This document shows, one piece after another, positions 1,223 to 62,810 of a DNA stretch of 64,000 nt (positions within the stretch are counted from its first letter, which is position 1; every line of letters begins with the position of its first letter). The notes beneath the pieces were generated by a model that did no database searches, was not told where the DNA came from, and worked only from the letters and a program-made list of their open reading frames with translations. A program made the position numbers and the translations under genes. The stretch is taken from positions 290,099 through 354,098 of the IMG/VR virus record IMGVR_UViG_3300043418_000072. One strand, written 5' to 3'.

Positions 1223-1296
1223 TGGTGCTCCCACTAAGAATCGAACTTAGGACTGCGCTATACCACAGCGCCGATATACCATTTACCTATGAGAGC
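1223..1296 (-). tRNA. tRNA-Thr(GGT)
   Basis: Cloverleaf, stem GCGCT/AGCGC, loop GTGGTAT (unusual G32), TTCGATT, CCA. Confidence 0.75.
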
Positions 1297-1302
1297 AGGT
1301 GT

Positions 1303-2511
1303 TTATTTTGTTTGTATAGAGAATACGTCTGTAAACGATTCGCCCCTAATAACATCATACTTCTTTGTATAGTCAAAGAATGCAGATGGCATATTTGGCG
1401 TTAATGTTGATAACGCTTGTTTCACATTTAGTAGCTCAGTAACCAATACTACATAATTTGGTGCAGTTAGTATTTCAACTGCTTTGTTAATTTGCTCAAT
1501 TGCCCGGCCCCGCAGTTGATTAGGCAAGTTGTTAAAGTTCATGCCTGGCGGAGAAGTTACGTTATAGCACTTCACGCCAATGGTGTTGTTTTCGTTATAT
1601 AGCCGCATCAGGAACGTTGCTGTTTCTGCAAAATCCATTAAACTATATGCAGATATTGCTGTTGTAACTTCCATCTTAAACGGCGATTGAAGTTGGTTAA
1701 GTCTAAGTACGTTACTTTCAACTTTTGGCCAATCTGTTCCGCTGCGAATATATTCTGCCGATTTACCCACTGCGTCAATGCTCATTACCATCTGCACTGT
1801 TTTAAATTTACTAAGACGGTCAACAAACAATGGGTTATACACACTGCAATTGGTGTATAGCTCTAGGTTAATTTCTTTGTTGAATCCGTTATCTATTAGA
1901 TAATCAAGGTAGTCGTAATATTCTTTTATTAAGAATGGTTCCCCACCCGTTAAGCATACTTTCCATACTGAGGCCAAGAAGGCAGGGTCCTTAAGACCCT
2001 CAATAGAATTGCTTTCAATTTTTGTAATAGGTATCACACTGTACTCAATGTGGCTACCTTCTTTATCTGGTTTAATGTTGTGCTGAATCTTTTCTGCTGC
2101 AAAGCTAGAGCTAGATGTTTCATCGCACATTCTGCATTTCATGTTACACAGATTACTAAATCTAAGTTCAATGCGGCCCGGTACTGTCGGTGTGTCGGCT
2201 GTAAATTTATTTGCAAACCATTGATCTTCGTACTCGGGTTCTGGGCCTACATTATAGTAATTCCAAATTGCGCCGCGTGTGCTTTTTAGCCCCATGTCTT
2301 CTTTTGTCTTGCAGCCGCCACATGCAGTTGGGGCAGTGCCACTCAGCATATCTGTCTTCATCTGCTTGAGCCAATCACTGTTGATATACTCAGCGGGTGT
2401 CATGCCAGACTCTAAGTTCTTGATGTAATGACACGGACTAGGAGAGTTGGCGTGATAGTACATCATTGTCCACGGTGCTGGGCAAAAGAACTTCTCAGAA
2501 AACTTTGCCAT
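1303..2511 (-). CDS. Radical SAM protein with N-terminal twitch/SPASM-like Cys motifs
   Basis: CNMKCRMC (CxxxCxxC), LTGGEP, YTN, MSIDA. Confidence 0.85.
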   Translation of the reverse strand: MAKFSEKFFCPAPWTMMYYHANSPSPCHYIKNLESGMTPAEYINSDWLKQMKTDMLSGTAPTACGGCKTKEDMGLKSTRGAIWNYYNVGPEPEYEDQWFANKFTADTPTVPGRIELRFSNLCNMKCRMCDETSSSSFAAEKIQHNIKPDKEGSHIEYSVIPITKIESNSIEGLKDPAFLASVWKVCLTGGEPFLIKEYYDYLDYLIDNGFNKEINLELYTNCSVYNPLFVDRLSKFKTVQMVMSIDAVGKSAEYIRSGTDWPKVESNVLRLNQLQSPFKMEVTTAISAYSLMDFAETATFLMRLYNENNTIGVKCYNVTSPPGMNFNNLPNQLRGRAIEQINKAVEILTAPNYVVLVTELLNVKQALSTLTPNMPSAFFDYTKKYDVIRGESFTDVFSIQTK

Positions 2512-2527
2512 TATGGCTCCTGTATTA

Positions 2528-2603
2528 TGGTGCCTCTAACCGGATTCGAACCAGTGACACAAGGATTTTCAATCCTCTGCTCTACCAACTGAGCTATAAA
2601 GGC
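2528..2603 (-). tRNA. tRNA-Phe(GAA)
   Basis: Cloverleaf, loop TTGAAAA, CCA. Confidence 0.95.
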
Positions 2604-2706
2604 AAATTTAAATGGCATTGTGGGTTCCTACCACACCTGAACCTTGTTCCACCGCTCGTTCAAAGACTTATGTGGCGATCCCGTGCATTCGCATTACACC
2701 ATACCA

Positions 2707-2818
2707 TATAGAAGCACTCTCAAATGCAGGCATAGGAGGAGTCAAGCTCTGAAACTTTCGCATCTGCAGATACTAGGCTTCTTCTCCCGCTTTGACTTAT
2801 GCCAAGAATACTTCTATA
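2707..2818 (-). ncRNA. Long-stem structured RNA candidate
   Basis: Inverted repeat 2707-2720/2805-2818 plus inner GCATA..GTCAAG / CTTTGACTTATGC helix. Confidence 0.45.
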
Positions 2819-3045
2819 TAGGCTCCACCGTTAACGACAGCATTCGTCCTGGCTTTATTTTATGTCGGTTAATGCACGGTGGACACACATGCCGACGGGG
2901 TTACAGTTTCAATGATGGGATTCGAACCCACTAACTACCCGTGCGCTGCGGGTTGTGCTACGCTCAATATAAAACTGGTTTACTCTGTTTCGAACCAGAC
3001 CAACAGTATATCTTTGCACTATCTTTCCATGTCGTCTTCATTGTT

Positions 3046-3146
3046 ACCATATAGAAACACACTATGTGGAATCGAACCACTGACCCTTTCACTCCGTAGA
3101 GACCGTGCAATACGCTTAGTCGCCGACTAGTATGTTTTTATATGGT
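3046..3146 (-). ncRNA. Long-stem RNA with tRNA T-arm
   Basis: 19-nt inverted repeat (wobble pairs) enclosing GTGG-TTCGATT-CCAC. Confidence 0.55.
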
Positions 3147-3220
3147 AGAAGCACTGGGGCTCGAACCCAGGACCCTCGGATTAAAAGTCCGATGCTCTAA
3201 ACCAACTGAGCTATACTTCC
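3143..3220 (-). tRNA. tRNA-Lys(TTT)
   Basis: Cloverleaf, loop CTTTTAA, CCA. Confidence 0.95.
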
Positions 3221-3227
3221 ATGACCT

Positions 3228-3358
3228 TACCATATCAAAGTACGCTACGGAATCGAACCGCAGTCGTCAACCTTTCCCTCCAGGGCAATTGATACAATTA
3301 TAGCTTCCACAGGAGCGACCTGATTCACTATAATGCACTAGCGTACTTTGATATGGTA
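3228..3358 (-). ncRNA. Long-stem RNA with tRNA T-arm
   Basis: Perfect 20-bp inverted repeat taccatatcaaagtacgcta / tagcgtactttgatatggta; GCGG-TTCGATT-CCGT inside. Confidence 0.6.
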
Positions 3359-3428
3359 GGGGCACAGAGAATCGAACTCTGGTTCTCTGGTTAAAAGCCA
3401 GATACTTTAGCCGCTAAGTTATACCCCC
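3354..3428 (-). tRNA. tRNA-Lys(TTT)
   Basis: Cloverleaf, loop CTTTTAA, CCA. Confidence 0.93.
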
Positions 3429-3431
3429 ATA

Positions 3432-3506
3432 TGGTCCACAGCCAGAGAATCGAACTCTGTTAGCCCGGGTAAGAGCCGGGTACTTCGCCAGCAAAGTTTG
3501 CTGTGG
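3432..3506 (-). tRNA. tRNA-Lys(CTT)
   Basis: Cloverleaf, CCCGG/CCGGG stem, loop CTCTTAC, CCA. Confidence 0.9.
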
Positions 3507-3519
3507 ATGGATTCGTAAA

Positions 3520-3594
3520 TTACTTTTCTTTTACGTGCCATCCAGGACCATACGGGGGTCTAGGATGACACTATCGTTTACCTGAACGTTTCAT
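3520..3594 (-). other. Mini-ORF MKRSGKR-UAG followed by a hairpin (read-through would give MKRSGKR-X-CHPRPPYGPGWHVKEK)
   Basis: AGGA upstream; TAG at 3573-3571; hairpin TGTCATCC/GGATGGCA begins immediately after the TAG. Confidence 0.5.
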
Positions 3595-3608
3595 GACATT
3601 TTTCCTTT

Positions 3609-4280
3609 TTAATTCCAAAGTAAGTCAAAGTTGCCAGCTAACACTTTCTTAACGCTTGCAGTCTTGTCACTTACGTGATCTTTAACTGTATCGTCTTGAA
3701 AGCGGTATGTGCGAATTTTGTCTCCTCGCATCCCTGAACCAACTTGTTGCTTTCTGTTGCTTGCTAAGTTGTTATTATAACAGTCTTTTGTTATCTTGTC
3801 AACTCTTTCTCTAATAGTTTGCATGGCTTCTGCCAAACTATTTTCCCTACTGCGGCACTGTGCTGTTACTACTGTGCCGCTAGGTACGTGCGTAACACGG
3901 GCACTGTTTTGGTGCTTGTTACGGTGTTGTCCTCCTGCGCCTGTTCCGCTGTACCATTCAATCTTCAGATCTGAGTCAAGAATAGCAGTGGTCGGCACAC
4001 TTGGATCAACGACAGCGACAGTAACGGTACTAGTATGTACTCGTCCTTTTCGCTCAGTTGGTGGTACACGCTGTATTCGGTGTCCACCTGGCTCGTTGTA
4101 TAAGCCAGATAAATCAGCACCCTCGACTAAGATATGAACTTCGCCAAGATACTCATTTATCAGGCGGCTAGTTCAGCCCTTGCTGTGTGCAAATTTAATG
4201 TAGGCTTGCGCCAAGTCTTTTACAAATAGTTTACTGTCTTCGCCACCTTCTGCGGCACGGACTTCAATTACACGTTTCAT
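3609..4280 (-). CDS. prfA: RF1-like peptide chain release factor lacking domain 1, with in-frame UGA at codon 36
   Basis: Hand translation: IEVRAAEGG...SKG*TSR...EPGGHRIQRVPPTERKGRVHTS...GAGGQH...GSGMRGDKIRTY; PxT and GGQ motifs; TGA 4175-4173 is in frame with ORF 3609-3998. Confidence 0.9.
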
Positions 4281-4605
4281 ATTCATTTTTCTCTTTTAAT
4301 CGCATAGCTTCTAATCTTGCTTTCAAGAATAGTTCAACTACATCTTTATTTAACTTAGTAAATCCTGTCTTGATTAGAAAGAACAATTCGTCTTTTTCTG
4401 ACTCAAGCCATACCACGTGAGCATCACCTGTATTGCCCACTGCCCCAAGTCCTTCGGGGTTGCTGAATCTCTGTGCCGCGTTACAAATGAACGCAAACTT
4501 TACCCCAAAGTCCCTTGATAGTACTTCTGGACCAGTGGCCTCACCTTGGGCAATCCGGTACACATAGTTGTACTCGTACGGAACGTCAACGTAGACTTTG
4601 TGCAT
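4264..4605 (-). CDS. Hypothetical protein
   Basis: 113-aa ORF packed between phosphatase and RF gene, overlapping both. Confidence 0.65.
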   Translation of the reverse strand: MHKVYVDVPYEYNYVYRIAQGEATGPEVLSRDFGVKFAFICNAAQRFSNPEGLGAVGNTGDAHVVWLESEKDELFFLIKTGFTKLNKDVVELFLKARLEAMRLKEKNEYETCN

Positions 4606-5108
4606 TAGATATCACCTTCGTGGCTTGGGGGTAAAATGATACCACCTGCGCTGTATTGGTATGGTTGACCATTGATTGTTGGCTCTTCGTTCTCATCGTA
4701 TGTCCATCCCAGATGCTTCATCATGCGATGCTTGACTAGCAAGTTAGGAGCACGAAATGCTTCAGTGTCATCAAACCCAAGCATGACCCCAACTTCACAA
4801 ACTGCACCACTGCGGCAAACACCGGCATGGCAGTGAACAATCACGTTCATGCGATTCTCTAGTGCATGTTGCAACAAACGAACTAGCTCCGCAGCTTGCT
4901 CGTGACTGCAACGCATTTCTTCTTCAAGAACGTAGTCCTTTTCCTCTACATCGAGGAACTCAAATTGATGAACTTCTCTAAACTTGTAAAGGGGGGTAGG
5001 ACACTCGCTCCCGCAGTCAACAATTTGAATCAACATAGCGTTATCACCGGGGTTTATGTGAAACCCTTTAGTGACATCGCTACGTGCTACGTTTTGGATC
5101 CAGGGCAT
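4605..5108 (-). CDS. Dual-specificity / tyrosine phosphatase family protein
   Basis: HCHAGVCRS = CX5R loop; start reassigned to MPWIQ (AAGGA RBS). Confidence 0.8.
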   Translation of the reverse strand: MPWIQNVARSDVTKGFHINPGDNAMLIQIVDCGSECPTPLYKFREVHQFEFLDVEEKDYVLEEEMRCSHEQAAELVRLLQHALENRMNVIVHCHAGVCRSGAVCEVGVMLGFDDTEAFRAPNLLVKHRMMKHLGWTYDENEEPTINGQPYQYSAGGIILPPSHEGDI

Positions 5109-5280
5109 TTTGTTTCCTTGTGTTAAATACAGTATGAGCAAACCCAATCCTGGATTCGATGAATTACTTAAACTCGGCAACGGAACTTATTCCAATGCTA
5201 AGAGCTTCTCTTGTGTTAAACATTTTACACGAGATTATCCTGAAAAGCAAGATTTGCCTTTTGTACAGGATATGAAATTC

Positions 5281-5314
5281 TGGCAGAGGATAGTGGAATC
5301 GAACCACTAATGAC
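5281..5314 (-). pseudogene. tRNA 3' half fragment (T-arm + acceptor strand + GCCA)
   Basis: GTCATTAGTGGTTCGATTCCACTATCCTCTGCCA abutting the CCA of tRNA-Gln. Confidence 0.7.
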
Positions 5315-5392
5315 TGGCAGGGGTTATCGGATTCGAACCGATGATACTAATTTCAAAGACTAGTGCTTTAGGCCAAACTAAGCTAAACCCCA
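5315..5392 (-). tRNA. tRNA-Gln(TTG)
   Basis: Loop CTTTGAA, G73, CCA. Confidence 0.88.
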
Positions 5393-5396
5393 ACAA

Positions 5397-5798
5397 TTAT
5401 CTATATTTTTCCAAGTTGTTTAATGTCCATCTACCGACATTTTTACCTTTATTTCTACCAGCAAATGTATCTGTTTGACTATGGCAGTTAGGACATAATA
5501 ATCTTAGATTATCTAGTTTATTATTACTTGAGTCACCGTTTATGTGGTCCACTTGACACTTAATTGGACGACTGGCCCATTCGGATATTCCGCAAGTGGA
5601 ACACTTGTTACCAAATAAACTCATTAACACACTGTATATTGTTGGCCGATTTGTTATTTGCCCATCAACAATAAGTTTTTTATTTTCTGCTAATACCATA
5701 CTAGATTTATGCTGACTCTGGCATGCGTGATTACAATAAACTCTCTCTTGTGTTGAATATCTTGGTATGATTTCTTTTTTACAATTTAAGCATAACAT
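5397..5798 (-). mobile_element. HNH homing endonuclease inserted in tRNA array
   Basis: CSTCG...QVDHINGDSSNNKLDNLRLLCPNCHSQT. Confidence 0.88.
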
Positions 5799-5953
5799 AG
5801 TGTTATTCTCCTTAATTGTATTTATAACGTTGGCTTGATTGTGCCAACGTTATACCAAATTGGTGGACAACCGTTTAACGTCCGATCGCCCAAAGACGGG
5901 GTCTGTGTGCTAACAATTTATCCTATTATACGCCGCTAGCAAAGGCGAGGCTC

Positions 5954-6028
5954 TGGGGAGAAGTACGGGAATCGAACCCGTGATAGCGGAATCACAACCC
6001 GCGGTTTTGCCACTAAACTAACGACTCC
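5954..6028 (-). tRNA. tRNA-His(GTG)
   Basis: Loop TTGTGAT, G-1:C73, CCA. Confidence 0.92.
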
Positions 6029-6035
6029 ATAACTC

Positions 6036-6245
6036 TTAGTCGCGCAACTTTTTCAAGTACTCGCGGCCAATTTTTCCTTCTTCAATTTCTTTCAACACTG
6101 TTGCAGTGATGCCACCAGCGCCACTTACTTTTGCAGCATGTCCTCGCTTGAGTTCACGTGCTCGTGCGCTTGCAATAAGCACTAGATCAAAACGATTACC
6201 AACTTGGTCTACTGCTGCTGCTGAAGTGTTTCTACTATTTGACAT
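6036..6245 (-). CDS. rpoZ: RNA polymerase omega subunit
   Basis: VGNRFDLVLIASARAREL...TVLKEIEEGKI matches the RpoZ signature. Confidence 0.88.
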   Translation of the reverse strand: MSNSRNTSAAAVDQVGNRFDLVLIASARARELKRGHAAKVSGAGGITATVLKEIEEGKIGREYLKKLRD

Positions 6246-6255
6246 AACTACCCTT

Positions 6256-6684
6256 TTAAAAATCTTCCGTAACTTGCTTTAAGCCTTCAATTTGGTCAAG
6301 CTCAAAGTCTTCAATGTGCTTAACTGATCCGCCATAGTAGCCATTGTGGCTGTTACGCACTTCAATGTCAATGTAGCCGCGGTCGGTTTTGATAGTCCAG
6401 AACCCGTCTTGAACTACTTCGTATCCGTCTTCTTCGCGATTATCGCCCCAGCCTTTGTCTTCTGTTTCAGTCACCAATGCGCCACGCAATAGATCAAAGC
6501 TGTTACCTTCACCTAGGATAGTAGCACCATTGATGTGATTGAACCACACGCTGTTGCAACAATCGTTCTGTGTATCAAAACGAAAATACTTGCCGCTAAC
6601 TGTACGGAATACCAATGCCCAGCTGTCGTTGCCTAGAAAGATTCCGTTAATGCGCTCACCGCGCAATACTTTGAATGCTGACAT
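6256..6684 (-). CDS. Hypothetical phage protein
   Basis: ORF; start reassigned to MSAFK (AAGGA RBS) to avoid overlap with tRNA-Arg. Confidence 0.7.
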   Translation of the reverse strand: MSAFKVLRGERINGIFLGNDSWALVFRTVSGKYFRFDTQNDCCNSVWFNHINGATILGEGNSFDLLRGALVTETEDKGWGDNREEDGYEVVQDGFWTIKTDRGYIDIEVRNSHNGYYGGSVKHIEDFELDQIEGLKQVTEDF

Positions 6685-6702
6685 TGTATTTCCTTTGTTG
6701 AT

Positions 6703-6777
6703 TGGTGCGTCTGGATGGAATCGAACCACCATTCCTAAGTTCGTAGCCTAGTGTACTTTCCATTGTACTACAGACGC
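6703..6777 (-). tRNA. tRNA-Arg(ACG)
   Basis: Loop CTACGAA, CCA. Confidence 0.92.
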
Positions 6778-6781
6778 AAAT

Positions 6782-6858
<77 letters not shown>

Positions 6859-6969
6859 AATATGCTTTACAACACTGTGGGCTGTCCACTCAAGTCCGTG
6901 TCAGACATATAGCAGTACACTAAATCTCGTCTACTATACATTCCAGTTTACTGCTGGTTCAGTTAAAAT

Positions 6970-7045
6970 TGGTGGAGAATATCGGACTCGAACCGATCAC
7001 CTACAGCTTGCAAAGCTGCCGCTCTCCCAGATGAGCTAATTCCCC
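6970..7045 (-). tRNA. tRNA-Ala(TGC)
   Basis: Loop TTTGCAA, G3:U70, CCA. Confidence 0.95.
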
Positions 7046-7049
7046 AATT

Positions 7050-7123
7050 TGGATGCGGGTGCAAGATTTGAACTTGCGATGCTCCGAGCTTATGAGACTG
7101 GAGTGGTGGCCGCCCTACCCGCT
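7050..7123 (-). tRNA. tRNA-Met(CAT), atypical (unpaired 1:72, reduced D-arm)
   Basis: Loop CTCATAA, T-arm GCAAG-TTCAAAT-CTTGC, CCA. Confidence 0.7.
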
Positions 7124-7130
7124 ATAACCT

Positions 7131-7204
7131 TGGTGCCCCATAACAGAATCGAACTGCTATCCCCGGATTACAAAACCGGTGTTCTACCATTTAACTAATG
7201 GGGC
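7131..7204 (-). tRNA. tRNA-Thr(TGT)
   Basis: Loop TTTGTAA, CCA. Confidence 0.9.
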
Positions 7205-7210
7205 GAAATT

Positions 7211-7286
7211 TGGCTGGCAAACCTGGGCTCGAACCAGGGACATCTTGATTAACAGTCAAGCGCTCTACCGACTGAGCTATATGCCA
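7211..7286 (-). tRNA. tRNA-Asn(GTT)
   Basis: Loop CTGTTAA, G73, CCA. Confidence 0.95.
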
Positions 7287-7294
7287 ATAACACT

Positions 7295-7323
7295 ATTATA
7301 TATGACACGCACATGCTTGTCAA
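7295..7323 (-). promoter_or_regulatory. Sigma70-type promoter
   Basis: TTGACA-N17-TATAAT. Confidence 0.85.
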
Positions 7324-7330
7324 TAAATTT

Positions 7331-7405
7331 TGGTACCCGATGCAAGATTTGAACTTGCGACCAACGGCTTATCAAGCCGCTGCTCTACCACTGAGCTAAC
7401 CGGGT
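7331..7405 (-). tRNA. tRNA-Ile(GAT)
   Basis: Loop TTGATAA, CCA. Confidence 0.95.
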
Positions 7406-7413
7406 AAATTAAA

Positions 7414-7618
7414 TTTGTAAGTAGTTGAGCCGCTGTTATCTCAACGCTTCACCCGAATTAACTAGTCCGGACGGGGGCAGTCTGCCACTAGGAATACTTG
7501 TCCAGTACAGCCTCCAAATGGCCCGCGCACGGTGGGATTCGAACCCATTAACCTTTTACTAAACAACACCTTCGAAGAATATTGAATAGCGTGACGTTCT
7601 CTTGCTGACACTTACAAA
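7414..7618 (-). ncRNA. About 205-nt structured RNA with terminal stem and internal T-arm
   Basis: TTTGTAAGT/ACTTACAAA ends; TGGG-TTCGAAT-CCCA; CTAGT/ACTAG and other helices. Confidence 0.55.
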
Positions 7619-7620
7619 AC

Positions 7621-7696
7621 TGGCGCCGTGGACGGGAATCGAACCCGCCTAGGTCTCATCGACAGTGAGGTGCCCTACCCAGAGAGCTACCACGGC
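7621..7696 (-). tRNA. tRNA-Asp(GTC)
   Basis: Loop CTGTCGA, G73, CCA. Confidence 0.92.
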
Positions 7697-7703
7697 ATTA
7701 ACT

Positions 7704-7778
7704 TGGAGCGGGTAGTCGGTATCGAGCCGACTACTCAAGTTTGGAAGACTAGTGTGTATCCGTAAACACCTTACCCGC
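7704..7778 (-). tRNA. tRNA-Gly(TCC)
   Basis: Loop CTTCCAA, CCA. Confidence 0.92.
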
Positions 7779-7785
7779 TAAAACT

Positions 7786-7872
7786 TGGAGGATAGAAACA
7801 GAATCGAACTGTTACCGCTTTCGCAGTAGATCGGTTTAGCAAACCAACTCGGCACCATGCACACTACTATCC
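7786..7872 (-). tRNA. tRNA-Ser(GCT)
   Basis: Loop TTGCTAA, long variable arm, CCA. Confidence 0.88.
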
Positions 7873-7877
7873 ATAAC

Positions 7878-7953
7878 TGGCATCCTGTACGGGAATCGAA
7901 CCCGTCTCTACAACTTGAAAGGCTGTTGATCTAAACCGATAATCTAACAGGAT
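7878..7953 (-). tRNA. tRNA-Glu(TTC)
   Basis: Loop CTTTCAA, CCA. Confidence 0.9.
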
Positions 7954-7960
7954 ATAAAAC

Positions 7961-8037
7961 TGGCGCCTCGTATCGGGCTCGAACCGACGGCCTCAACAGT
8001 GACAGTGTTGCGCTCTAACCAACTGAGCTAACGAAGC
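7961..8037 (-). tRNA. tRNA-Asp(GTC)
   Basis: Loop CTGTCAC, CCA. Confidence 0.95.
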
Positions 8038-8044
8038 ATAAATT

Positions 8045-8378
8045 TCGAGGAGCATCATTCTTGAGGACTCTTACCCCACCCTTTTGCTCACGCTGTTGTT
8101 CACTGCGATTGCCACCATGCTCCCTCGCTGGCGGGTGTTTACTTTGTGGCTCTTGCTTTCCACTTGATTCTGTTAGTTCAAGGAATACACGGCGTTAAAC
8201 TAACCCACAAACTAGATGTGGTGATTAACTTCTGTCCTTGTTGCAGTCTTTCCGCTAACAATACTTTTCCTTACCCTACTGGACCGACTTTGCTTATCGT
8301 TCGTCACTTTCGTGAAGCCCGGGAAGTCTCTCCCGGGTCGGTTTCCGTCTACTCTAGTACTCACTATTGTCTTAGTGT
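8045..8378 (-). ncRNA. About 330-nt structured RNA candidate
   Basis: No credible ORF; helices CGAGGGAGCAT/ATGCTCCTCG, CCCGGGA/TCCCGGG, TCAC-GAAA-GTGA. Confidence 0.5.
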
Positions 8379-8380
8379 TT

Positions 8381-8466
8381 TGGTGGGGATAGTTAGATTC
8401 GAACCAACTCATCCAGTGGAAACAGATTTACAGTCTGCCGCGCCTCTCCAACTGCGCCGTATCCCC
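8381..8466 (-). tRNA. tRNA-Tyr(GTA)
   Basis: Loop CTGTAAA, long variable arm, CCA. Confidence 0.95.
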
Positions 8467-8478
8467 ATTATTTCTTTA

Positions 8479-8658
8479 TGCTGTTAAGGCTGATATCTAA
8501 TAAACCCTACTAGGAATCGAACCTAGGCCCCCGACGGATTATGCCGGTGTGCGTCCACTACACTATAGAGACTCCCTCCTCTTTCGCTCGGCAAAGCTAC
8601 ACGAATTGAGGTTAGATTTCAGACTGCTTTCAGATTGCCGTCATCAGCCTTAACAACA
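8479..8658 (-). ncRNA. Long-stem RNA enclosing a CCA-less tRNA-like cloverleaf
   Basis: 16-nt terminal inverted repeat; D-like GTG-TAGTGGAC-GCAC; CTAGG-TTCGATT-CCTAG. Confidence 0.55.
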
Positions 8659-8664
8659 CAAACT

Positions 8665-8734
8665 TGGCGCCCCTAACAGGAATCGAACCTGTCTACGTTC
8701 GGCTTCAAATCCGACTCGCAACTCAGTCCGGGGC
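8665..8734 (-). tRNA. Atypical 70-nt tRNA (vestigial D-arm, 8-nt anticodon loop ATTTGAAG; identity unclear)
   Basis: GCCCC/GGGGC acceptor, ACAGG-TTCGATT-CCTGT, G73, CCA. Confidence 0.55.
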
Positions 8735-8744
8735 ATAAACTTAT

Positions 8745-8889
8745 GTACATCAGCGGGATTCGAACCCGCACACATCACCCGAACATACCGCATTGTTAGC
8801 GGCTTACACATCCTAGGCCACTGGCCTTTACTGTCGATGTCCTACTTAGTGTTATGGGTAATGCTCTCCCAATTGATAGTATGACGCAC
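8745..8889 (-). ncRNA. tRNA-like RNA with about 70-nt branched insert replacing the anticodon loop
   Basis: Acceptor GTGCGTCA/TGATGTAC, D-arm, CATTACC/GGTGATG, GCGGG-TTCGAAT-CCCGC; no encoded CCA. Confidence 0.65.
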
Positions 8890-8963
8890 GAAATAGAAAC
8901 ACATTGCTAGTTTCGCCTTGAGCCGACTTTAAAATCAGATGCGGTTTAAGCAATGTGAAAACT

Positions 8964-9103
8964 TGGTGTAGTAATTGGGACTTGAACCCAACTAGTTATC
9001 TGTTTTTACAAACGGGTGATATCACTTCCCATCGCCATATGCCCCTCGGGTTTGCAATCCTGCTACGCACACAGTCAAATAACCTGTCAACCTAACTTAC
9101 CAC
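8964..9103 (-). ncRNA. Miniature tmRNA-like RNA (140 nt)
   Basis: GTGGTAA/TTACTAC with G3:U70, A73, CCA; stemless D-loop GTTAGGTTGACA; helix GGTTATTTG/CAGATAACT; TTGGG-TTCAAGT-CCCAA. Confidence 0.65.
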
Positions 9104-9110
9104 AAAAACT

Positions 9111-9185
9111 TGGAAGAGCTACGGGGAATCGAACCCCGCTTGCCTGGATGAAAACCAGATGTCCTAACCGATAGACGATAGCTCC
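9111..9185 (-). tRNA. tRNA-Glu(TTC)
   Basis: Loop TTTTCAT, CCA. Confidence 0.93.
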
Positions 9186-9186
9186 A

Positions 9187-9269
9187 CTATATGTAAACAC
9201 AATACTCATCCGCTTTACGCTAATATCACTTTAGGCGATTTGATTGTTCGGCATTGTGTTTGCATATAG
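9187..9269 (-). ncRNA. Long-stem RNA candidate
   Basis: 17-nt inverted repeat ctatatgtaaacacaat / attgtgtttgcatatag. Confidence 0.5.
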
Positions 9270-9369
9270 AGCCCTGTAACTTGTACAGGGATATATGACA
9301 GTATCTTTTTAAAGACTGTTAGCATTACAGTACGATCACTGCGCTGCGTTGTTTGTTTAACATGTATGT

Positions 9370-9398
9370 ATTATAGTACCAATTTCTTTATTGGACAA
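9370..9398 (-). promoter_or_regulatory. Sigma70-type promoter
   Basis: TTGTCC-N17-TATAAT; shares downstream ACAYACATGTTAA with the 9465 promoter. Confidence 0.7.
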
Positions 9399-9464
9399 CT
9401 GTTATTTTCTAACTGTTGTTTTTATGCTACTCTACACTTTATGCTAATTTCTTAACATGTGTGT

Positions 9465-9493
9465 ATTATAGCACCCATTTCATTAAGTGTCAA
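9465..9493 (-). promoter_or_regulatory. Sigma70-type promoter
   Basis: TTGACA-N17-TATAAT. Confidence 0.85.
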
Positions 9494-9496
9494 ATT

Positions 9497-9573
9497 TGGT
9501 ACCCCTGGCTGGATTCGAACCTGCAACCAAAAGATTTTAAGTCTGTCCGCACTACCAATTAGCGTACAGGGGC
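9497..9573 (-). tRNA. tRNA-Leu(TAA), short variable loop
   Basis: Loop CTTAAAA, A73, CCA. Confidence 0.85.
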
Positions 9574-9576
9574 ATA

Positions 9577-9653
9577 TGGTACCTTCGGGCGGATTCGAAC
9601 CCCCAACCAACAGTTTCTAAAACTATCCGCACTACCAATTAGCGTACGAAGGC
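9577..9653 (-). tRNA. tRNA-Leu(TAG), short variable loop
   Basis: Loop TTTAGAA, A73, CCA. Confidence 0.85.
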
Positions 9654-9661
9654 ATTGTATG

Positions 9662-9918
9662 TGGCTTCGTTAGCAGGACTCGAACCTGCGACCCGGGGCT
9701 TAAATCGCGTATGCTGGGTGCCCCGTGAGTTTCCAAAAGTTACCCTCACATCCCCTCAATGCCTTATCTCACTTTTCACACATTTCAACCTGTCCCGCAC
9801 TTCCCGGGCTCACAGTGTTTGGTTTTAAAGCCTACGCGATTGTTATCTACTTTGTGCTACTAGATGTATTATCTCATCTACTCAATGCTGCTCTACCTTC
9901 TCTCTACTCTATAACGAA
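9662..9918 (-). ncRNA. 257-nt tRNA-like RNA with large insert and probable pseudoknot
   Basis: Acceptor TTCGTTA/TAACGAA, G73, CCA; GCAGG-TTCGAGT-CCTGC; CGGGGC/GCCCCG; AATCGCGTA/TACGCGATT. Confidence 0.65.
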
Positions 9919-9925
9919 ATAAACT

Positions 9926-10002
9926 TGGTACCCCGTGTCTGATTCGAACAGACAGCCAACTCCTTTTGAGAGAATCCGCACTACCAATTAGCGTAACGGG
10001 GC
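9926..10002 (-). tRNA. tRNA-Leu(CAA), short variable loop
   Basis: Loop CTCAAAA, A73, CCA. Confidence 0.85.
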
Positions 10003-10012
10003 ATTTAAATTT

Positions 10013-10088
10013 TGGTGCAACCTCCAGGGATCGAACCTGGTTCAATGGCTCTTCAGACCACCGCTATGACCACATCAGCTAAAGTTGC
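10013..10088 (-). tRNA. tRNA-Phe(GAA)
   Basis: Loop CTGAAGA, CCA. Confidence 0.9.
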
Positions 10089-10091
10089 ATT

Positions 10092-10166
10092 TGGTAGTTC
10101 CTAGTGGTGTCGAACCACCGACCTCTACAATGTCAATGTAGCGTTCTACCGCTGAACTAAGGAACT
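10092..10166 (-). tRNA. tRNA-Val(GAC)
   Basis: Loop TTGACAT, CCA. Confidence 0.93.
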
Positions 10167-10173
10167 ATAAAAC

Positions 10174-10247
10174 TGGCACGGGAACCGGGGCTCGAACCCG
10201 GAACGACAGAGTCAAAGTCTGTTGTGTTACCATTACACCATCCCCGA
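10174..10247 (-). tRNA. tRNA-Gln(TTG)
   Basis: Loop CTTTGAC, G73, CCA. Confidence 0.92.
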
Positions 10248-10255
10248 ACAAAAAT

Positions 10256-10334
10256 TGGACACTGTGGTGTAAGTTGCAGTACACATTACTAACTATTTGC
10301 AAGGCTACACATAGCGGCCCCGCTTAACACAGTG
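10256..10334 (-). tRNA. Atypical tRNA-like RNA, possibly Cys
   Basis: Perfect CACTGTG/CACAGTG, U73, CCA; TTGCAAA segment; non-canonical D and T arms. Confidence 0.45.
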
Positions 10335-10342
10335 ATAAAAAT

Positions 10343-10514
10343 TGGAGTCTAGTGCTGTTGTGACACAGCAACATCCCTTGAGCGAGAGCGTAGGAACTAA
10401 ATCTACGGGTTTAACACCTCTTGGGTTGAACAGTCAGGACAATTACTTTGTAAGCGTACTAAACAGCGCCTGTTCAGAGCGCTCCCTTTGGGTTACTTTC
10501 ATTTCCAACTAGAC
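10343..10514 (-). ncRNA. 172-nt tRNA-like RNA
   Basis: GTCTAGT/ACTAGAC + U + CCA; adjacent GCTGT-GTCACA-ACAGC T-arm analogue. Confidence 0.5.
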
Positions 10515-10519
10515 ATAAT

Positions 10520-10598
10520 TGGCTCCGAGTGTGGGAATCGAACCCACCTAACCACTGATTAACAGTCAGGTCCCTGCACCTTGCTTGGATTTCTCGGA
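10520..10598 (-). tRNA. tRNA-Asn(GTT)
   Basis: Loop CTGTTAA, G73, CCA. Confidence 0.9.
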
Positions 10599-10604
10599 AT
10601 AACT

Positions 10605-10680
10605 TGGTGCCCCAGTCCGGAATCGAACCGACTTCTCCTGCTTACAAGACAGGACCTCATCCATTAAAGGTTTCAAGGGC
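10605..10680 (-). tRNA. tRNA-Thr(TGT)
   Basis: Loop CTTGTAA, CCA. Confidence 0.88.
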
Positions 10681-10685
10681 ATATA

Positions 10686-10762
10686 TGGCATACCAGGAGA
10701 GATTCGAACTCCCATCACGCAATTTTGGAGACTGCTGTTCTGCCAATTGGAACTACTGGTAT
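10686..10762 (-). tRNA. tRNA-Trp(CCA) with U11-A24
   Basis: ATACCAG TA GTTC CAATTGGCA GAAC A GCAGT CTCCAAA ATTGC; G73, CCA. Confidence 0.93.
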
Positions 10763-10769
10763 ATAAACT

Positions 10770-10853
10770 TGGTGGATACTGTAGGAATCGAACCTACTCA
10801 CTTTACGAACTGGGTTACAGCCAGCCACACCTCTCCAACTGTGTCGAGTATCC
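10770..10853 (-). tRNA. tRNA-Tyr(GTA)
   Basis: Loop CTGTAAC, long variable arm, CCA. Confidence 0.93.
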
Positions 10854-10861
10854 ATTAACTT

Positions 10862-10935
10862 TGGTACCTGGTACAAGAATCGAACTTGTGATAAAGGCTT
10901 ATCAAGCCTCCGTTATACCATTTAACTAACCAGGT
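10862..10935 (-). tRNA. tRNA-Ile(GAT)
   Basis: Loop TTGATAA, CCA. Confidence 0.93.
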
Positions 10936-10941
10936 AAAATT

Positions 10942-11030
10942 TGGCGGGGAGATAGTAGAATCGAACTCTAACCACTTTCGCAGTCCATCGGTTTTCAAGA
11001 CCGTGACAGGCCCAGCCTGCATAACTCCCC
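10942..11030 (-). tRNA. tRNA-Ser(TGA)
   Basis: Loop CTTGAAA, long variable arm, G73, CCA. Confidence 0.88.
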
Positions 11031-11035
11031 GTGAT

Positions 11036-11109
11036 TGGTCTGGGTAGCTGGAATCGAACCAGCGCCTCGAGTATCCAAGACTCGTCGACTACCATTATCC
11101 TATACCCAG
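11036..11109 (-). tRNA. tRNA-Pro(TGG)
   Basis: Loop CTTGGAT, CCA. Confidence 0.92.
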
Positions 11110-11116
11110 ATTATTT

Positions 11117-11191
11117 TGGTGGAGGCCGGGGGTATCGAACCCCTCTAGACAATCTACGTGCAAGGCAGATCCGCAGCCCTCTGCTGCCCCC
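11117..11191 (-). tRNA. tRNA-Ala(TGC), reduced D-arm
   Basis: Loop CTTGCAC, G3:U70, A73, CCA. Confidence 0.8.
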
Positions 11192-11200
11192 ATAAAAGGT

Positions 11201-11347
11201 TTTTGAGAGCCCAACTATCCTCCTGGGAGGACTCACTGGATTGTCTCGTATGGACGAGTTTATCAACCACTATAGCAGCCTGGCGTTATCATGTAGTAGA
11301 CACTACACTATGCTATGTGGGACTCAAGTCCTACGTCTATCTCAAAA
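11201..11347 (-). ncRNA. Structured RNA candidate
   Basis: TTTTGAGA/TCTCAAAA ends; GGAC-TTGA-GTCC, CTCGT/ACGAG, TCCTCC/GGAGGA hairpins. Confidence 0.4.
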
Positions 11348-11349
11348 CT

Positions 11350-11424
11350 TGGTGGATGTAGCTAGATTCGAACTAGCGATAGTTACCGTATGAAGGTAGT
11401 GCATTACCACTTTGCTATACATCC
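11350..11424 (-). tRNA. tRNA-Met or Ile2 (CAT)
   Basis: Loop TTCATAC, A73, CCA. Confidence 0.88.
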
Positions 11425-11504
11425 AAATATATTCCTTAAGGTTTCCGGCGCTGGGCTCGGACATAGTATAGAATCAGAATCTATCTATCATCGTCATCCT
11501 TAAG

Positions 11505-11602
11505 GTATTCATAAACAAACTAGTGGGTCGCTGCCAAAAAATATGTTTCAAATATATTCTAGTCTTCTAGTTTGTTTGTGAATACCCTGTATTGCTACAG
11601 GA
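11505..11602 (-). ncRNA. CCTGT hairpin plus 19-bp long-stem RNA candidate
   Basis: gtattcataaacaaactag / ctagtttgtttgtgaatac; same layout as 9187-9292. Confidence 0.45.
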
Positions 11603-11746
11603 TATGTTAGGGTCGATACCCTAACCAGTTATTTGTACTCTGCTGTTACCGCCAGCATTTCATCCAACTGTCCGCCCGTTTAAAGATTATTATAGTGTTC
11701 TTTCAGGTCCTCGTTACCTGGGCATATAGCACTTATCTAACACTGT

Positions 11747-11899
11747 CTATGCGTGAAGTGAAAACTTTTTACGGCTTTCTAGTTCCTTCCTTGCACGTTC
11801 TAACTTTTCTTGAATCAACGTATTACGTTGTTCTGTTGTTAGCGTATGCTCGGCAGTAAACTTTACTTCACGAATTCTTTTATTAAAGTCTACCTTCAA
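11747..11899 (-). CDS. Small 50-aa protein (TTG start; KVDFNKRIREVKFTAEHTLTTEQRNTLIQEKLERARKELESRKKFSLHA)
   Basis: AAGGA RBS directly after the terminator U-tract; below ORF-track cutoff. Confidence 0.55.
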   Translation of the reverse strand: MKVDFNKRIREVKFTAEHTLTTEQRNTLIQEKLERARKELESRKKFSLHA

Positions 11900-11917
11900 A
11901 AATTTCTTCCTTAAAAC

Positions 11918-11947
11918 AAAAAACCCTAGGGTTTTTAATCCTAGGGT
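11918..11947 (-). terminator. Intrinsic terminator of candidate attenuator
   Basis: ACCCTAGG-ATTAAAAAC-CCTAGGGT + TTTTT. Confidence 0.85.
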
Positions 11948-11973
11948 CCTTTAAGTTTGTTAGCTACTACTTG

Positions 11974-12123
11974 TTAAGCGTAACCACTTCCCTCTAAGAA
12001 CCCTAAACTAATCTCCGGTGCGCGATCATTCGTATTCAAACTAAACGACATCCCTGACCAATAGGCCACTGTGCCTAAGGTAGACTGTTGTTGTTTAAGT
12101 GAATGAAGAATGTTTTGCATCAT
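11974..12123 (-). CDS. Candidate leader peptide, 49 aa (MMQNILHSLKQQQSTLGTVAYWSGMSFSLNTNDRAPEISLGFLEGSGYA)
   Basis: ATG 6 nt after the -10 box (leaderless); codons 40-43 complementary to the terminator 5' arm. Confidence 0.65.
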   Translation of the reverse strand: MMQNILHSLKQQQSTLGTVAYWSGMSFSLNTNDRAPEISLGFLEGSGYA

Positions 12124-12129
12124 GTTAGT

Positions 12130-12158
12130 ATTGTATGTTTATTTACCTTTGTTGTCAA
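12130..12158 (-). promoter_or_regulatory. Sigma70-type promoter with nested TAAATA
   Basis: TTGACA-N17-TACAAT; TAAATA at 12145-12140. Confidence 0.85.
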
Positions 12159-12233
12159 CCTCTTTAACAACATCTGGTAAATTTATTTATCTTTTTGTTT
12201 AAACTTTCGTTTCTTTGTTTGTTACAAGCCTCA

Positions 12234-12262
12234 ATTGTATGACACTTGTCTTTCTGTGTCAA
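12234..12262 (-). promoter_or_regulatory. Sigma70-type promoter
   Basis: TTGACA-N17-TACAAT. Confidence 0.8.
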
Positions 12263-12279
12263 CTACAACTTTTACCATT

Positions 12280-12363
12280 TGGTGCGAGAGACGGGACTCG
12301 AACCCGTAAGCCTTTCGGCGGCAGATTTTAAGTCTGCTGTGTATACCATTCCACCACTCTCGC
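12280..12363 (-). tRNA. tRNA-Leu(TAA), long variable arm
   Basis: Loop CTTAAAA, CCA. Confidence 0.95.
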
Positions 12364-12372
12364 GATACTTCT

Positions 12373-12401
12373 ATTATATATGCTTAACACAAGAGTGTCA
12401 A
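12373..12401 (-). promoter_or_regulatory. Sigma70-type promoter
   Basis: TTGACA-N17-TATAAT. Confidence 0.85.
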
Positions 12402-12411
12402 GCAATTTGTT

Positions 12412-12486
12412 TGGTCCGGCGTGCAGGAATCGAACCCACATTCGCAAGGTAGAAGCTTGCTGTACTATCCATTGTACTAACGCCAG
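12412..12486 (-). tRNA. tRNA-Arg(TCT)
   Basis: Loop CTTCTAC, CCA. Confidence 0.92.
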
Positions 12487-12491
12487 AAATT

Positions 12492-12566
12492 TGGTGCACC
12501 AACTTGGAATTGAACCAAGACTCAACCGATTATGAGTCGGCTGCTTTACCATTAAGCTATTGGTGC
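12492..12566 (-). tRNA. tRNA-Ile2/Met(CAT), Ile2-like
   Basis: CGACTCATAATCG anticodon arm, CCA. Confidence 0.88.
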
Positions 12567-15786: not shown

Positions 15787-16023
15787 TTAATCTTCGTACC
15801 CAGAATCAATGTCGTCTTCGTCGTCCTCAAACCCTGCTGCATATTCTTTATATGCACGGCCGAGTGCTGCATCTGTGCCGCTAAACTCTTTCAGCGAAAC
15901 GTCGTCGAGTGCGTCAACTAGCAACCCCATAAGATTATCTGCTGCTTCCTGGCGATCCTTAACAGGAATGTACTGTTTTAAAATTGTGTACACTTCACTT
16001 AGTACATCTGCTTCAATGCTCAT
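15787..16023 (-). CDS. Small acidic hypothetical protein
   Basis: 78-aa ORF in operon. Confidence 0.7.
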   Translation of the reverse strand: MSIEADVLSEVYTILKQYIPVKDRQEAADNLMGLLVDALDDVSLKEFSGTDAALGRAYKEYAAGFEDDEDDIDSGYED

Positions 16024-16951
16024 TTGATTTCCTTAATTTTGTTAACGGTATTAGTTTACGATCCATCTTTAGTCCGGCACATGCAAAAACACATAACGGT
16101 CTAGGCTGGGTATTTATTTCACTAGCGATATCCAGTTGTTCTGTTTCTTCAATGGTGTCAAATCCAATAGGATCAAACCTATCATCAAAAGGATCAAAGT
16201 GGCAGCACAAAGTGTACTTTCCGCTAGCTGTTATATATAGCCCAGGAGCCTCAAGGTGGGCACAATTCTTTGTACTTAGCTTTTGCTCATGGTTCACTCT
16301 GAAGTTAAAGGTTTGATCTTTTGTCCAAGGCTCAAGAATAAACTCTTCGCCTGTACGGTAGTTTCGTGCCGTTTCAACATTGCGCACTCCTTCAACTAAT
16401 TCAAAGTCTGCAAATTTTAACTGATTCGCTAGCTTAATGCAAGCATTAAGTTGGTGCTCGTTGTGCTTGAATGGAATAAATTGCCAAACTGCTTTGCCGC
16501 CTGCGTTGATAAATGCTGTTGCGTTTTCAATTACTTTGTTAAAGTCAGTGCCCTGTCTATATATCTCGTGGACTCCTGCTAGGCCATCAATCCCAAACCA
16601 GACTCTATGATCTGTATTGCTTAACTTGCGGCCGATTTCCGCCCACCAGTCTGCATTTCGCACACTTCCATTTGTGTGGATCGTAATCTGTTTCACTCGC
16701 GGGATAGTCCAGTCAAGGATTTCACTCAAGTCTGGGTGAATAGCCGGATCTCCGTAGCGACCGCAGAACTGTACTTTGGTCAAACCAGGCAATGCGTCAA
16801 TTGCAGTGCGTAGCTTGTCAACTACTAGATTCTGCGGTACCAGGCCGTCTTTGAGGCCAAATCCATTTTTATTTCGAGCACAACTAGGACACCAAGCATT
16901 ACATTTTGAGCTTAGTTCGACATGTAAGCTCTTGATGTCCTTTAGTAGCAT
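16013..16951 (-). CDS. Radical SAM protein
   Basis: CNAWCPSC; C-terminal Cys cluster. Confidence 0.85.
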   Translation of the reverse strand: MLLKDIKSLHVELSSKCNAWCPSCARNKNGFGLKDGLVPQNLVVDKLRTAIDALPGLTKVQFCGRYGDPAIHPDLSEILDWTIPRVKQITIHTNGSVRNADWWAEIGRKLSNTDHRVWFGIDGLAGVHEIYRQGTDFNKVIENATAFINAGGKAVWQFIPFKHNEHQLNACIKLANQLKFADFELVEGVRNVETARNYRTGEEFILEPWTKDQTFNFRVNHEQKLSTKNCAHLEAPGLYITASGKYTLCCHFDPFDDRFDPIGFDTIEETEQLDIASEINTQPRPLCVFACAGLKMDRKLIPLTKLRKSNEH

Positions 16952-62726: not shown

Positions 62727-62810
62727 TTTGTTTTCTCCTTAAAATATGAAAATAGCGTTCTAGGCCTACGCTGATGGTACAGCATAAACTCTCAATTAAG
62801 AGCGAACATA

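Follow-up and report, generated by a model that had tools for sequence, protein, structure and literature searches.

We consider it likely that the expression of a short RF1-like release factor gene of a jumbo phage relies on programmed read-through, specific to this gene, of a single in-frame UGA, which would be decoded as Trp under stimulation by an adjacent RNA hairpin and would be opposed only by the RF2 of the host. The gene was found in a 64,000-nucleotide stretch of DNA, referred to here as the window, which by its coordinates makes up the end of an IMG/VR contig of 354 kb. The window belongs to a jumbo myovirus; it has tail sheath and tube genes, and its terminase shares 53% identity with that of Pseudomonas phage PA5oct. 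Apart from this phage, the gene is carried by several hundred relatives that are uncultured and by a small number of bacterial genomes. The elements discussed in the following all lie on the minus strand of the window:

3609 to 4280, minus strand: whole recoded gene, a short RF1-like release factor with domains 2–4 only, made of 35 codons, UGA, 187 codons and TAA
4176 to 4280, minus strand: part 1, 35 codons, helix alpha5 region of RF1 domain 2 including the AEGGED tip
4173 to 4175, minus strand: in-frame UGA, codon 36, at the conserved Trp column
4166 to 4172, minus strand: spacer of 7 nt between UGA and hairpin
4104 to 4165, minus strand: conserved hairpin, recognized by covariation, folding and low pS
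3612 to 4172, minus strand: part 2, 187 codons, covering the remaining domain 2 with PPT, domain 3 with GGQ, and domain 4
4064 to 4056, minus strand: PPT motif
3935 to 3927, minus strand: GGQ motif
3609 to 3611, minus strand: the gene's own terminator TAA, also TAA in 76 of 78 relatives
10686 to 10762, minus strand: tRNA-Trp(CCA) with U11-A24 in the D stem, a candidate near-cognate decoder of the UGA
1223 to 12566, minus strand: array of 37 tRNA genes enclosing the release factor gene, none with anticodon UCA

Read from the ATG at 4280, a frame of 35 codons meets the TGA and continues for 187 codons to the TAA, so that read-through yields 223 residues. All relatives start at the same Met, with MK(R/K)xIE(I/V)RAAEGG as their common beginning and often with an in-frame stop codon just upstream. 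Gene length is constant among them, and the PPT and GGQ motifs, both intact in the window gene, are invariant. An earlier note on this DNA had described the read-through frame from its ATG through both motifs to the TAA and the length of 223 residues, had counted the stop as residue 31 from the E of EVRA, and had stated that E. coli RF1 carries Trp at this very position. As frame, motifs, E. coli alignment and Trp column have all been checked, this observation proves correct in every checkable detail. In the gapless alignment with the actual prfA of E. coli K-12, the N-terminal piece stops exactly one residue before the Trp of ...AEARR-W-RVEIM. Among 27 sampled bacterial RF1 sequences this column holds W in 24, F in two and Y in one.

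What kind of release factor is encoded here? Both Pfam domains of class I factors are found above their gathering scores, namely the RF-1 domain with 71.4 bits (cutoff 35) and the PCRF domain with 41.9 bits in the C-terminal piece and 30.0 bits in the N-terminal piece (cutoff 24). The reading head is of the PxT and not the SPF type, and GGQ is present. In the combined Pfam and NCBIfam search the two pieces match consecutive parts of the prfA profile, positions 115–146 for the N-terminal and 164–342 for the C-terminal piece (E = 1.5e-43). Nothing in the window gene matches profile positions 1–114, and domain 1 is therefore absent, in agreement with the earlier description of a PxT factor that lacks it. 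The prfA profile scores 149–156 bits compared to 96 for prfB. These values stay below the cutoffs of the canonical RF1 equivalogs TIGR00019 and NF001859 (423 and 400), the match being confined to profile positions 115–342 with domain 1 not included, and the PrfH model TIGR03072 reaches 41.7 bits against a cutoff of 166.65. The best matches in the PDB are solved RF1 structures, to which the C-terminal piece aligns with E = 4e-33 and the N-terminal piece without gaps. These findings support the assignment of the product as an RF1-type (PxT) factor without domain 1. Judged from the conserved residues of the reading head, it would release peptides at UAA and UAG and not at UGA.

NCBIfam and PHROGs contain no dedicated model for these short factors. 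In a phylogenetic tree they form one clade apart from bacterial RF1 with 99% support. Its basal members have L, I, F, V or W codons at the column of the UGA, and all TGA-type genes, representing 74 clusters at 80% identity, fall within one inner clade with 97% support. We also considered whether domain 1 had been split off as a 113-aa open reading frame just upstream (4605 to 4264, minus strand), whose terminal TGA lies 17 nt within the release factor gene. This idea was rejected, as the frame has no Pfam or PHROG match, was found in 24 loci, and sometimes lies downstream of the factor.

How widespread is the UGA among the relatives? A scan with the single protein P0011 gave no match in IMG/VR, and more distant relatives were recovered by alignment queries instead, which widened the family to about 46% identity and included metagenome contigs and bacterial chromosomes. 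IMG/VR holds at least 317 relatives of the C-terminal piece, and the counts of TGA cover those loci that are readable. In successive screens TGA was observed at codon 36 in 79 of 79, then 157 of 157, and finally 301 of 301 loci. The latter correspond to 108 distinct sequences with identities down to about 46%, and neither TAA, TAG nor TGG ever occupies codon 36 in them. The preceding codon is GGN in 107 of the 108, and the UGA is followed by A in 76, by G in 27, by C in five and by T in none. A base other than U after the UGA and a Gly before it are reportedly weak-termination contexts in E. coli (Poole 1995; Bjornsson 1996), so that the context observed here would fit inefficient termination. 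In 368 loci the stretch from the N-terminal motif to the PPT motif contains exactly one stop, and the frame is kept across it.

Synonymous sites are near saturation (pS 0.70–0.76). Since this made the distance correction of dS fail, raw pS and pN are reported. Upstream of the stop, pN is 0.16 compared to a pS of 0.70 (pN/pS about 0.23), and downstream pN is 0.20 (pN/pS about 0.28); both flanks of the UGA are under purifying selection. Such a stop, conserved in frame in diverged relatives and followed by a sequence under coding selection, is expected of programmed read-through. The earlier note had taken the UGA for a gate of this gene and not for global recoding, an idea that would have suffered from a loss of TGA in relatives with decaying flanks. 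Both checks have been carried out, and they gave the reverse of this outcome.

A few members of the clade require a closer look. Four proteins of public catalogues that fall inside the TGA clade carry a W at the column. Two of them, P0005 and P0012, are encoded by a true TGG. P0020 (L546) is a code-4 translation of the canonical TGA. The catalogue protein for P0015 (L543:551-1222) is a code-4 translation as well; in its gene the canonical codon is TGG, while four codons farther on there is an in-frame TGA, and then a small hairpin. P0015 and P0020 had been candidates for sense-codon controls and were discarded as code-4 translations of TGA, which leaves P0005 and P0012 as the only true TGG cases. 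The TGG in these two lineages implies that the UGA is dispensable, and it counts for Trp as the inserted residue. The arrangement in P0015 suggests that it is the presence of an early UGA, rather than the codon itself, that is kept by selection. In about 50 homologues the column is occupied by W, L, I, F, V, A or Y, and never by Cys. Trp would be the best candidate for the residue placed at the UGA, going by the homologous sequences.

A conserved RNA structure accompanies the UGA. In the window it consists of the paired segments 4165-4163/4106-4104, 4161-4155/4114-4108 and 4153-4147/4122-4116 and an apical part at 4146-4123. Counted from the T of the TGA as zero, nucleotides 10–12, 14–20 and 22–28 pair with 69–71, 61–67 and 53–59, giving a hairpin of 17 bp that may extend up to about 24 bp. 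Across 73 distinct sequences 92.3% of the cells are paired, a value reached by none of 500 shuffles in a test that ignores the relatedness of the sequences. Sliding the 3' partner by one to three columns reduces pairing to 25–46%. Eight pairs of the hairpin are changed on both sides, for example A-U (53) with U-A (17), U-A (38) with C-G (13), and A-U (47) with G-C (15). The window hairpin has a minimum free energy of -32.6 kcal/mol and a folding z-score of -4.79. Moreover, pS dips to 0.28–0.45 at codons 37–48 and 53–60, which correspond to both arms of the hairpin.

The structure is not confined to the close relatives of the window gene. In divergent lineages and bacterial copies, hairpins of quite different sequence are found at the same place, and the dominant fold predicted for each of 127 distinct sequences begins mostly 3–12 nt from the T of the TGA, with a median of 8. 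For the 81 nt following the codon, the median folding z-score is -3.19 in the 127 UGA-type sequences compared to +0.17 in 33 sense-codon homologues (p = 1e-15 with relatedness ignored). The UGA-type genes hence have a conserved cis element beside the stop that is absent from sense-codon homologues. For some members (L287, L292, L293, L296 and L401) the predicted folds are weak, at -9 to -19 kcal/mol. The hairpin region has no match in Rfam, even at E = 10. The small hairpin that had been proposed earlier, with CGCC/GGCG and GATA/TATC as its stems, can indeed be drawn and pairs in 89.9% of cells; its covariation, in contrast, does not exceed that of shuffled alignments. This element of 4+4 bp has been replaced by the covarying 17-bp hairpin, which uses the same 5' arm. 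The subclade of the window has Ser AGC at codon 38, and its UGA can form part of a 5-bp mini-hairpin, GGCUG/UAGCC (4166 to 4178, minus strand); most relatives have ACC at codon 38, with which this mini-hairpin is impossible.

Is the UGA then part of a wider change in the genetic code? In the window, 54 non-overlapping open reading frames of at least 100 aa end in TAA (42), TGA (nine) or TAG (three). The stops at 311, 4264 and 16013 had already been cited in the earlier note for UGA as an ordinary terminator without global recoding, and the fuller count is in line with this. The window contains no second real gene split by an in-frame TGA, and the terminase, sheath and tube genes are free of it. 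Elsewhere in the window the genetic code is standard. A late-gene or genome-wide reassignment of TGA (code 4) does not match a single affected gene among normal TGA terminators and no tRNA(UCA).

The strongest of the alternatives is still an unlikely one: a dedicated decoder encoded elsewhere in the genome, either a tRNA(UCA) or an odd tRNA, as in code-4 phages, with which the gene would be on whenever it is expressed. Stop-recoded phages do pair RF1 with a TGA suppressor tRNA (10.1101/2021.08.26.457843), and our tRNA scan of the source contig spans 64 kb of its 354 kb, with relatives represented by flanking loci. None of the 37 tRNA genes of the window has the anticodon UCA, however, and none was seen among the several hundred tRNA genes in 56 flanking loci of relatives, whose release factor gene is likewise set in a tRNA array. 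No dedicated suppressor tRNA is thus within reach. In relatives, ARAGORN reports a small number of unusual tRNAs whose anticodons have 2 or 4 bases (L164:5244-5318, L188:4095-4169, L193:2664-2763, L200:2955-3028, L201:2481-2581), none of which pairs with UGA on its face. A suppressor would furthermore sit uneasily with the fact that no other window gene has an in-frame TGA and that TGA is a normal terminator; it is also at odds with the TGA kept by copies on bacterial chromosomes, and it leaves the conserved hairpin unexplained.

Near-cognate decoding of UGA by tRNA-Trp(CCA) is known in bacteria, which makes the tRNA-Trp(CCA) encoded in the array a candidate decoder. In its D stem it has the pair U11-A24, the hallmark of the Hirsh UGA suppressor, as do most tRNA-Trp of the relatives; some have G24. 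We initially regarded this pair as a special Hirsh-type adaptation and have downgraded it to a lead, since A24 is common in natural tRNA-Trp (PMC13092985) and not universal in the group. Outside the window, in the closest relatives, a second and clearly different tRNA-Trp(CCA) with U32 in the anticodon loop and G1-C72 was observed about 6.4 kb beyond the release factor gene (L161:11300-11376 and L163:17429-17505). Two isoacceptors for Trp, an amino acid with one codon, are unusual.

A coding region in which a stable hairpin of variable sequence begins no more than about 10 nt after a UGA also has the anatomy of a bacterial SECIS. We therefore asked whether the codon could specify selenocysteine, with the hairpin bound by SelB, and find this very unlikely. 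That the column never holds Cys in the roughly 50 homologues, and is Trp or otherwise hydrophobic, argues against a selenoprotein. By homology it belongs to the packing of domain 2 and not to a catalytic site. Neither a tRNA-Sec nor a match to the SECIS models of Rfam was found, and the apical loop is farther from the UGA than is usual for SECIS models.

Just as improbable is the view that the gene makes two polypeptides, a 35-residue peptide and a re-initiated C-terminal protein, which assemble or act apart. Gene callers do report the C-terminal part as separate proteins, about 180 residues long and beginning with TTG or another codon. A conserved start codon after the UGA is absent, however; in the window the first ATG, GTG or TTG occurs at 3998, 59 codons downstream and already past the PPT motif. 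The residues right after the UGA are also conserved in frame, and this frame is kept in every locus. A bypass of the kind known from T4 gene 60, in which ribosomes would leave the mRNA at the Gly codon preceding the stop and land on another Gly codon beyond the hairpin, ranks lower still. It would make use of the succession of Gly codon, stop and hairpin, and the main clade does keep GGC at the 3' foot of the hairpin. The supposed gap, in contrast, is open, changes its length in whole codons and is homologous to β-strands of RF1, and the divergent lineages L124 and L127 have no Gly codon at the 3' foot. Finally, a sequencing error or decaying pseudogene can be dismissed: even if a single G-to-A change makes TGA from TGG, the TGA is universal in 301 independent assemblies with saturated synonymous sites, purifying selection on both flanks, constant lengths and a single stop in 368 loci.

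We thus return to programmed read-through as the preferred reading. With the UGA as a conserved, gene-specific recoding site, the full-length product requires its decoding. Ribosomes would start at 4280, translate 35 codons of which the last is Gly, and arrive at the UGA, at which point the foot of a stable hairpin, about 7 nt farther on, would stand at the mRNA entry channel. Termination at this point would be left to the RF2 of the host, because the product is itself a PxT factor for UAA and UAG. A fraction of the ribosomes would accept the near-cognate Trp-tRNA(CCA) of either host or phage, place Trp where RF1 has its Trp, and complete the 223-residue RF1-like factor without domain 1. If host RF2 is the only competitor and the hairpin raises read-through, the output would follow the ratio of tRNA-Trp to RF2. 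This could cap or time the synthesis of the phage factor, keeping it scarce or delaying it until the phage tRNAs accumulate, and the gene may in this way act as a cross-regulatory switch that senses RF2.

How does this arrangement compare to known systems? Programmed read-through is known, and so is recoding in release factor genes; what is new is the same-frame form of recoding for a bacterial-type release factor. The closest relative in logic is the +1 frameshift of prfB, likewise a class I release factor gene with an early UGA whose synthesis depends on termination by RF2. In contrast to prfB, the frame is the same on both sides of the stop, there is neither a CUU U slip site nor a conserved upstream element resembling a Shine-Dalgarno sequence, and a 3' hairpin takes the place of the stimulator. 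The codons at -1 and -2 vary (GGN; AAR, CAC, CTN and others), which does not fit a frameshift of the prfB type. Any control would here also be exerted by the RF2 of the host and not by the product itself, because an RF1-type product should not read UGA. In a 2016 review of recoding, Atkins et al. noted that bacterial RF2 and RF1 genes had been searched for a read-through stop without a change of frame, and that none was known (PMC5009743). A giant-virus release factor gene, as cited there, needs both read-through and frameshifting for its expression (PMC5009743). This is again a virus-encoded termination factor whose own mRNA is recoded at a stop; going by that citation, the giant-virus factor is a eukaryotic-type eRF1 of an amoeba virus with two recoding events, in contrast to the bacterial-type RF1 with one UGA and a hairpin described here.

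As for phages, stop-recoded genomes carry RF1 and a suppressor tRNA as a 'code change module' (10.1101/2021.08.26.457843). They combine a phage RF1 with TGA decoded as Trp, as we suppose for the present gene. Their RF1 gene is written in the standard code and many of their late genes contain TGA, whereas here TGA is found only in the RF1 gene; and they use a suppressor tRNA, of which none is seen here. Genes for RF1 and RF2 were already known from phages (PMC7162821). Absence of domain 1 is a feature shared with PrfH (RF-H), a class I release factor paralogue that lacks it (PMC6514570). Unlike PrfH, the window protein keeps the PxT reading head and fits prfA far better, and an RtcB partner was not found among the neighbors examined (tRNAs, a DSP-like phosphatase and an HNH endonuclease).

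In phage Q-beta, normal tRNA-Trp decodes the UGA between coat and A1 as Trp with an efficiency of a few per cent. It is a phage gene with a UGA read as Trp, which would apply to the present gene as well. The Q-beta UGA is a natural terminator, beyond which a C-terminally extended minor capsid protein is made; here, in contrast, the stop lies inside a conserved domain with a hairpin adjacent to it, so that only the read-through product can be functional. The closest counterparts of the signal are found in eukaryotic viruses, in which read-through involves a UGA and, beginning about 8 nt after it, an extended 3' stem-loop (Firth et al. 2011, PMC3159437). The shared anatomy comprises the stop, a spacer of 7–8 nt, a long conserved stem-loop and suppressed synonymous variation. 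Another read-through signal of a eukaryotic virus is the MuLV pseudoknot. Unlike in the bacterial setting considered here, these signals act on 80S ribosomes and against eRF1. A literature search returned no description of these short factors or of hairpin-stimulated read-through in bacteria outside selenocysteine insertion. Because we know of no precedent for a bacterial hairpin that stimulates non-selenocysteine read-through, its presumed role in raising read-through is drawn by analogy with the eukaryotic viruses.

The genomic setting gives additional clues. Copies of the TGA type occur in the chromosomes of Alphaproteobacteria with a standard code, namely Thalassospira xianhensis, Jiella sp., Rhodovibrio sodomensis and Gemmobacter caeni. 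In Gemmobacter caeni DSM 21823 (L474:1-4519) the flanks of the copy hold genes for three tRNAs, a PTH2 peptidyl-tRNA hydrolase and a Thg1-like tRNA 5'-end enzyme, and the locus looks like a translation or tRNA-repair island. Among cultured phages the gene is carried by none, the best tblastn match being about 41% identical and of the bacterial type, and megablast of positions 3000–5500 against them returned tRNA-Lys segments only. A factor without domain 1 might provide extra termination capacity at UAA and UAG, or it might serve in rescue alongside tRNA-repair genes.

The neighborhood of the gene offers further observations. A 191-aa open reading frame (4605 to 5180, minus strand) has weak matches to dual-specificity/tyrosine phosphatases (DSPc, Tc-R-P, Rit1 DUSP-like); it is 70–77% conserved, and in 137 related loci it lies close to the release factor gene. 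Its product may act as a phosphatase on RNA or tRNA ends, in functional connection with the factor. The regions 311 to 2511, 5397 to 5798 and 16013 to 16951 (all minus strand) encode two radical SAM proteins, an FMN TIM-barrel protein (NMO/IMPDH/DHO-dehydrogenase-like) and an HNH endonuclease. The radical SAM and FMN proteins flank the tRNA array and could be tRNA-modification enzymes; the HNH endonuclease lies inside the array and could be a mobile nuclease. Farther away, an Rfam 'freshwater-2' motif (62724 to 62803, minus strand; 55.9 bits, gathering 49.9) sits just upstream of the open reading frame 61812-62726 and is consistent with a freshwater origin, and a 540-aa open reading frame (42194 to 43816, minus strand) matches the PHROG tryptophan halogenase with E = 9e-152, which is unexpected among structural genes.

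What does the finding mean for phage biology? The family defines a large unannotated group of phage termination factors inside tRNA arrays, and it explains why gene callers split such genes or translate them with code 4. It would supply the missing bacterial-type case of same-frame recoding, and a cross-wired one at that, with an RF1-type gene gated by a stop specific to RF2. It would also bring the signal of stop, spacer and long stem-loop from eukaryotic viruses into bacteria, where it could be taken apart with simple genetic tools and by translation in vitro; Gemmobacter caeni DSM 21823, Thalassospira xianhensis MCCC 1A02616 and Rhodovibrio sodomensis DSM 9895 are available as cultured carriers. 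More tentatively, and with the odds somewhat against it, this may be the first natural case of RNA-structure-stimulated read-through in bacteria that does not involve selenocysteine, a translational sensor or timer wiring a viral RF1-type factor to the balance of RF2 and a tRNA-Trp that is partly supplied by the phage. If this is true, phages and prophages would use such a device to retune termination in the infected cell.
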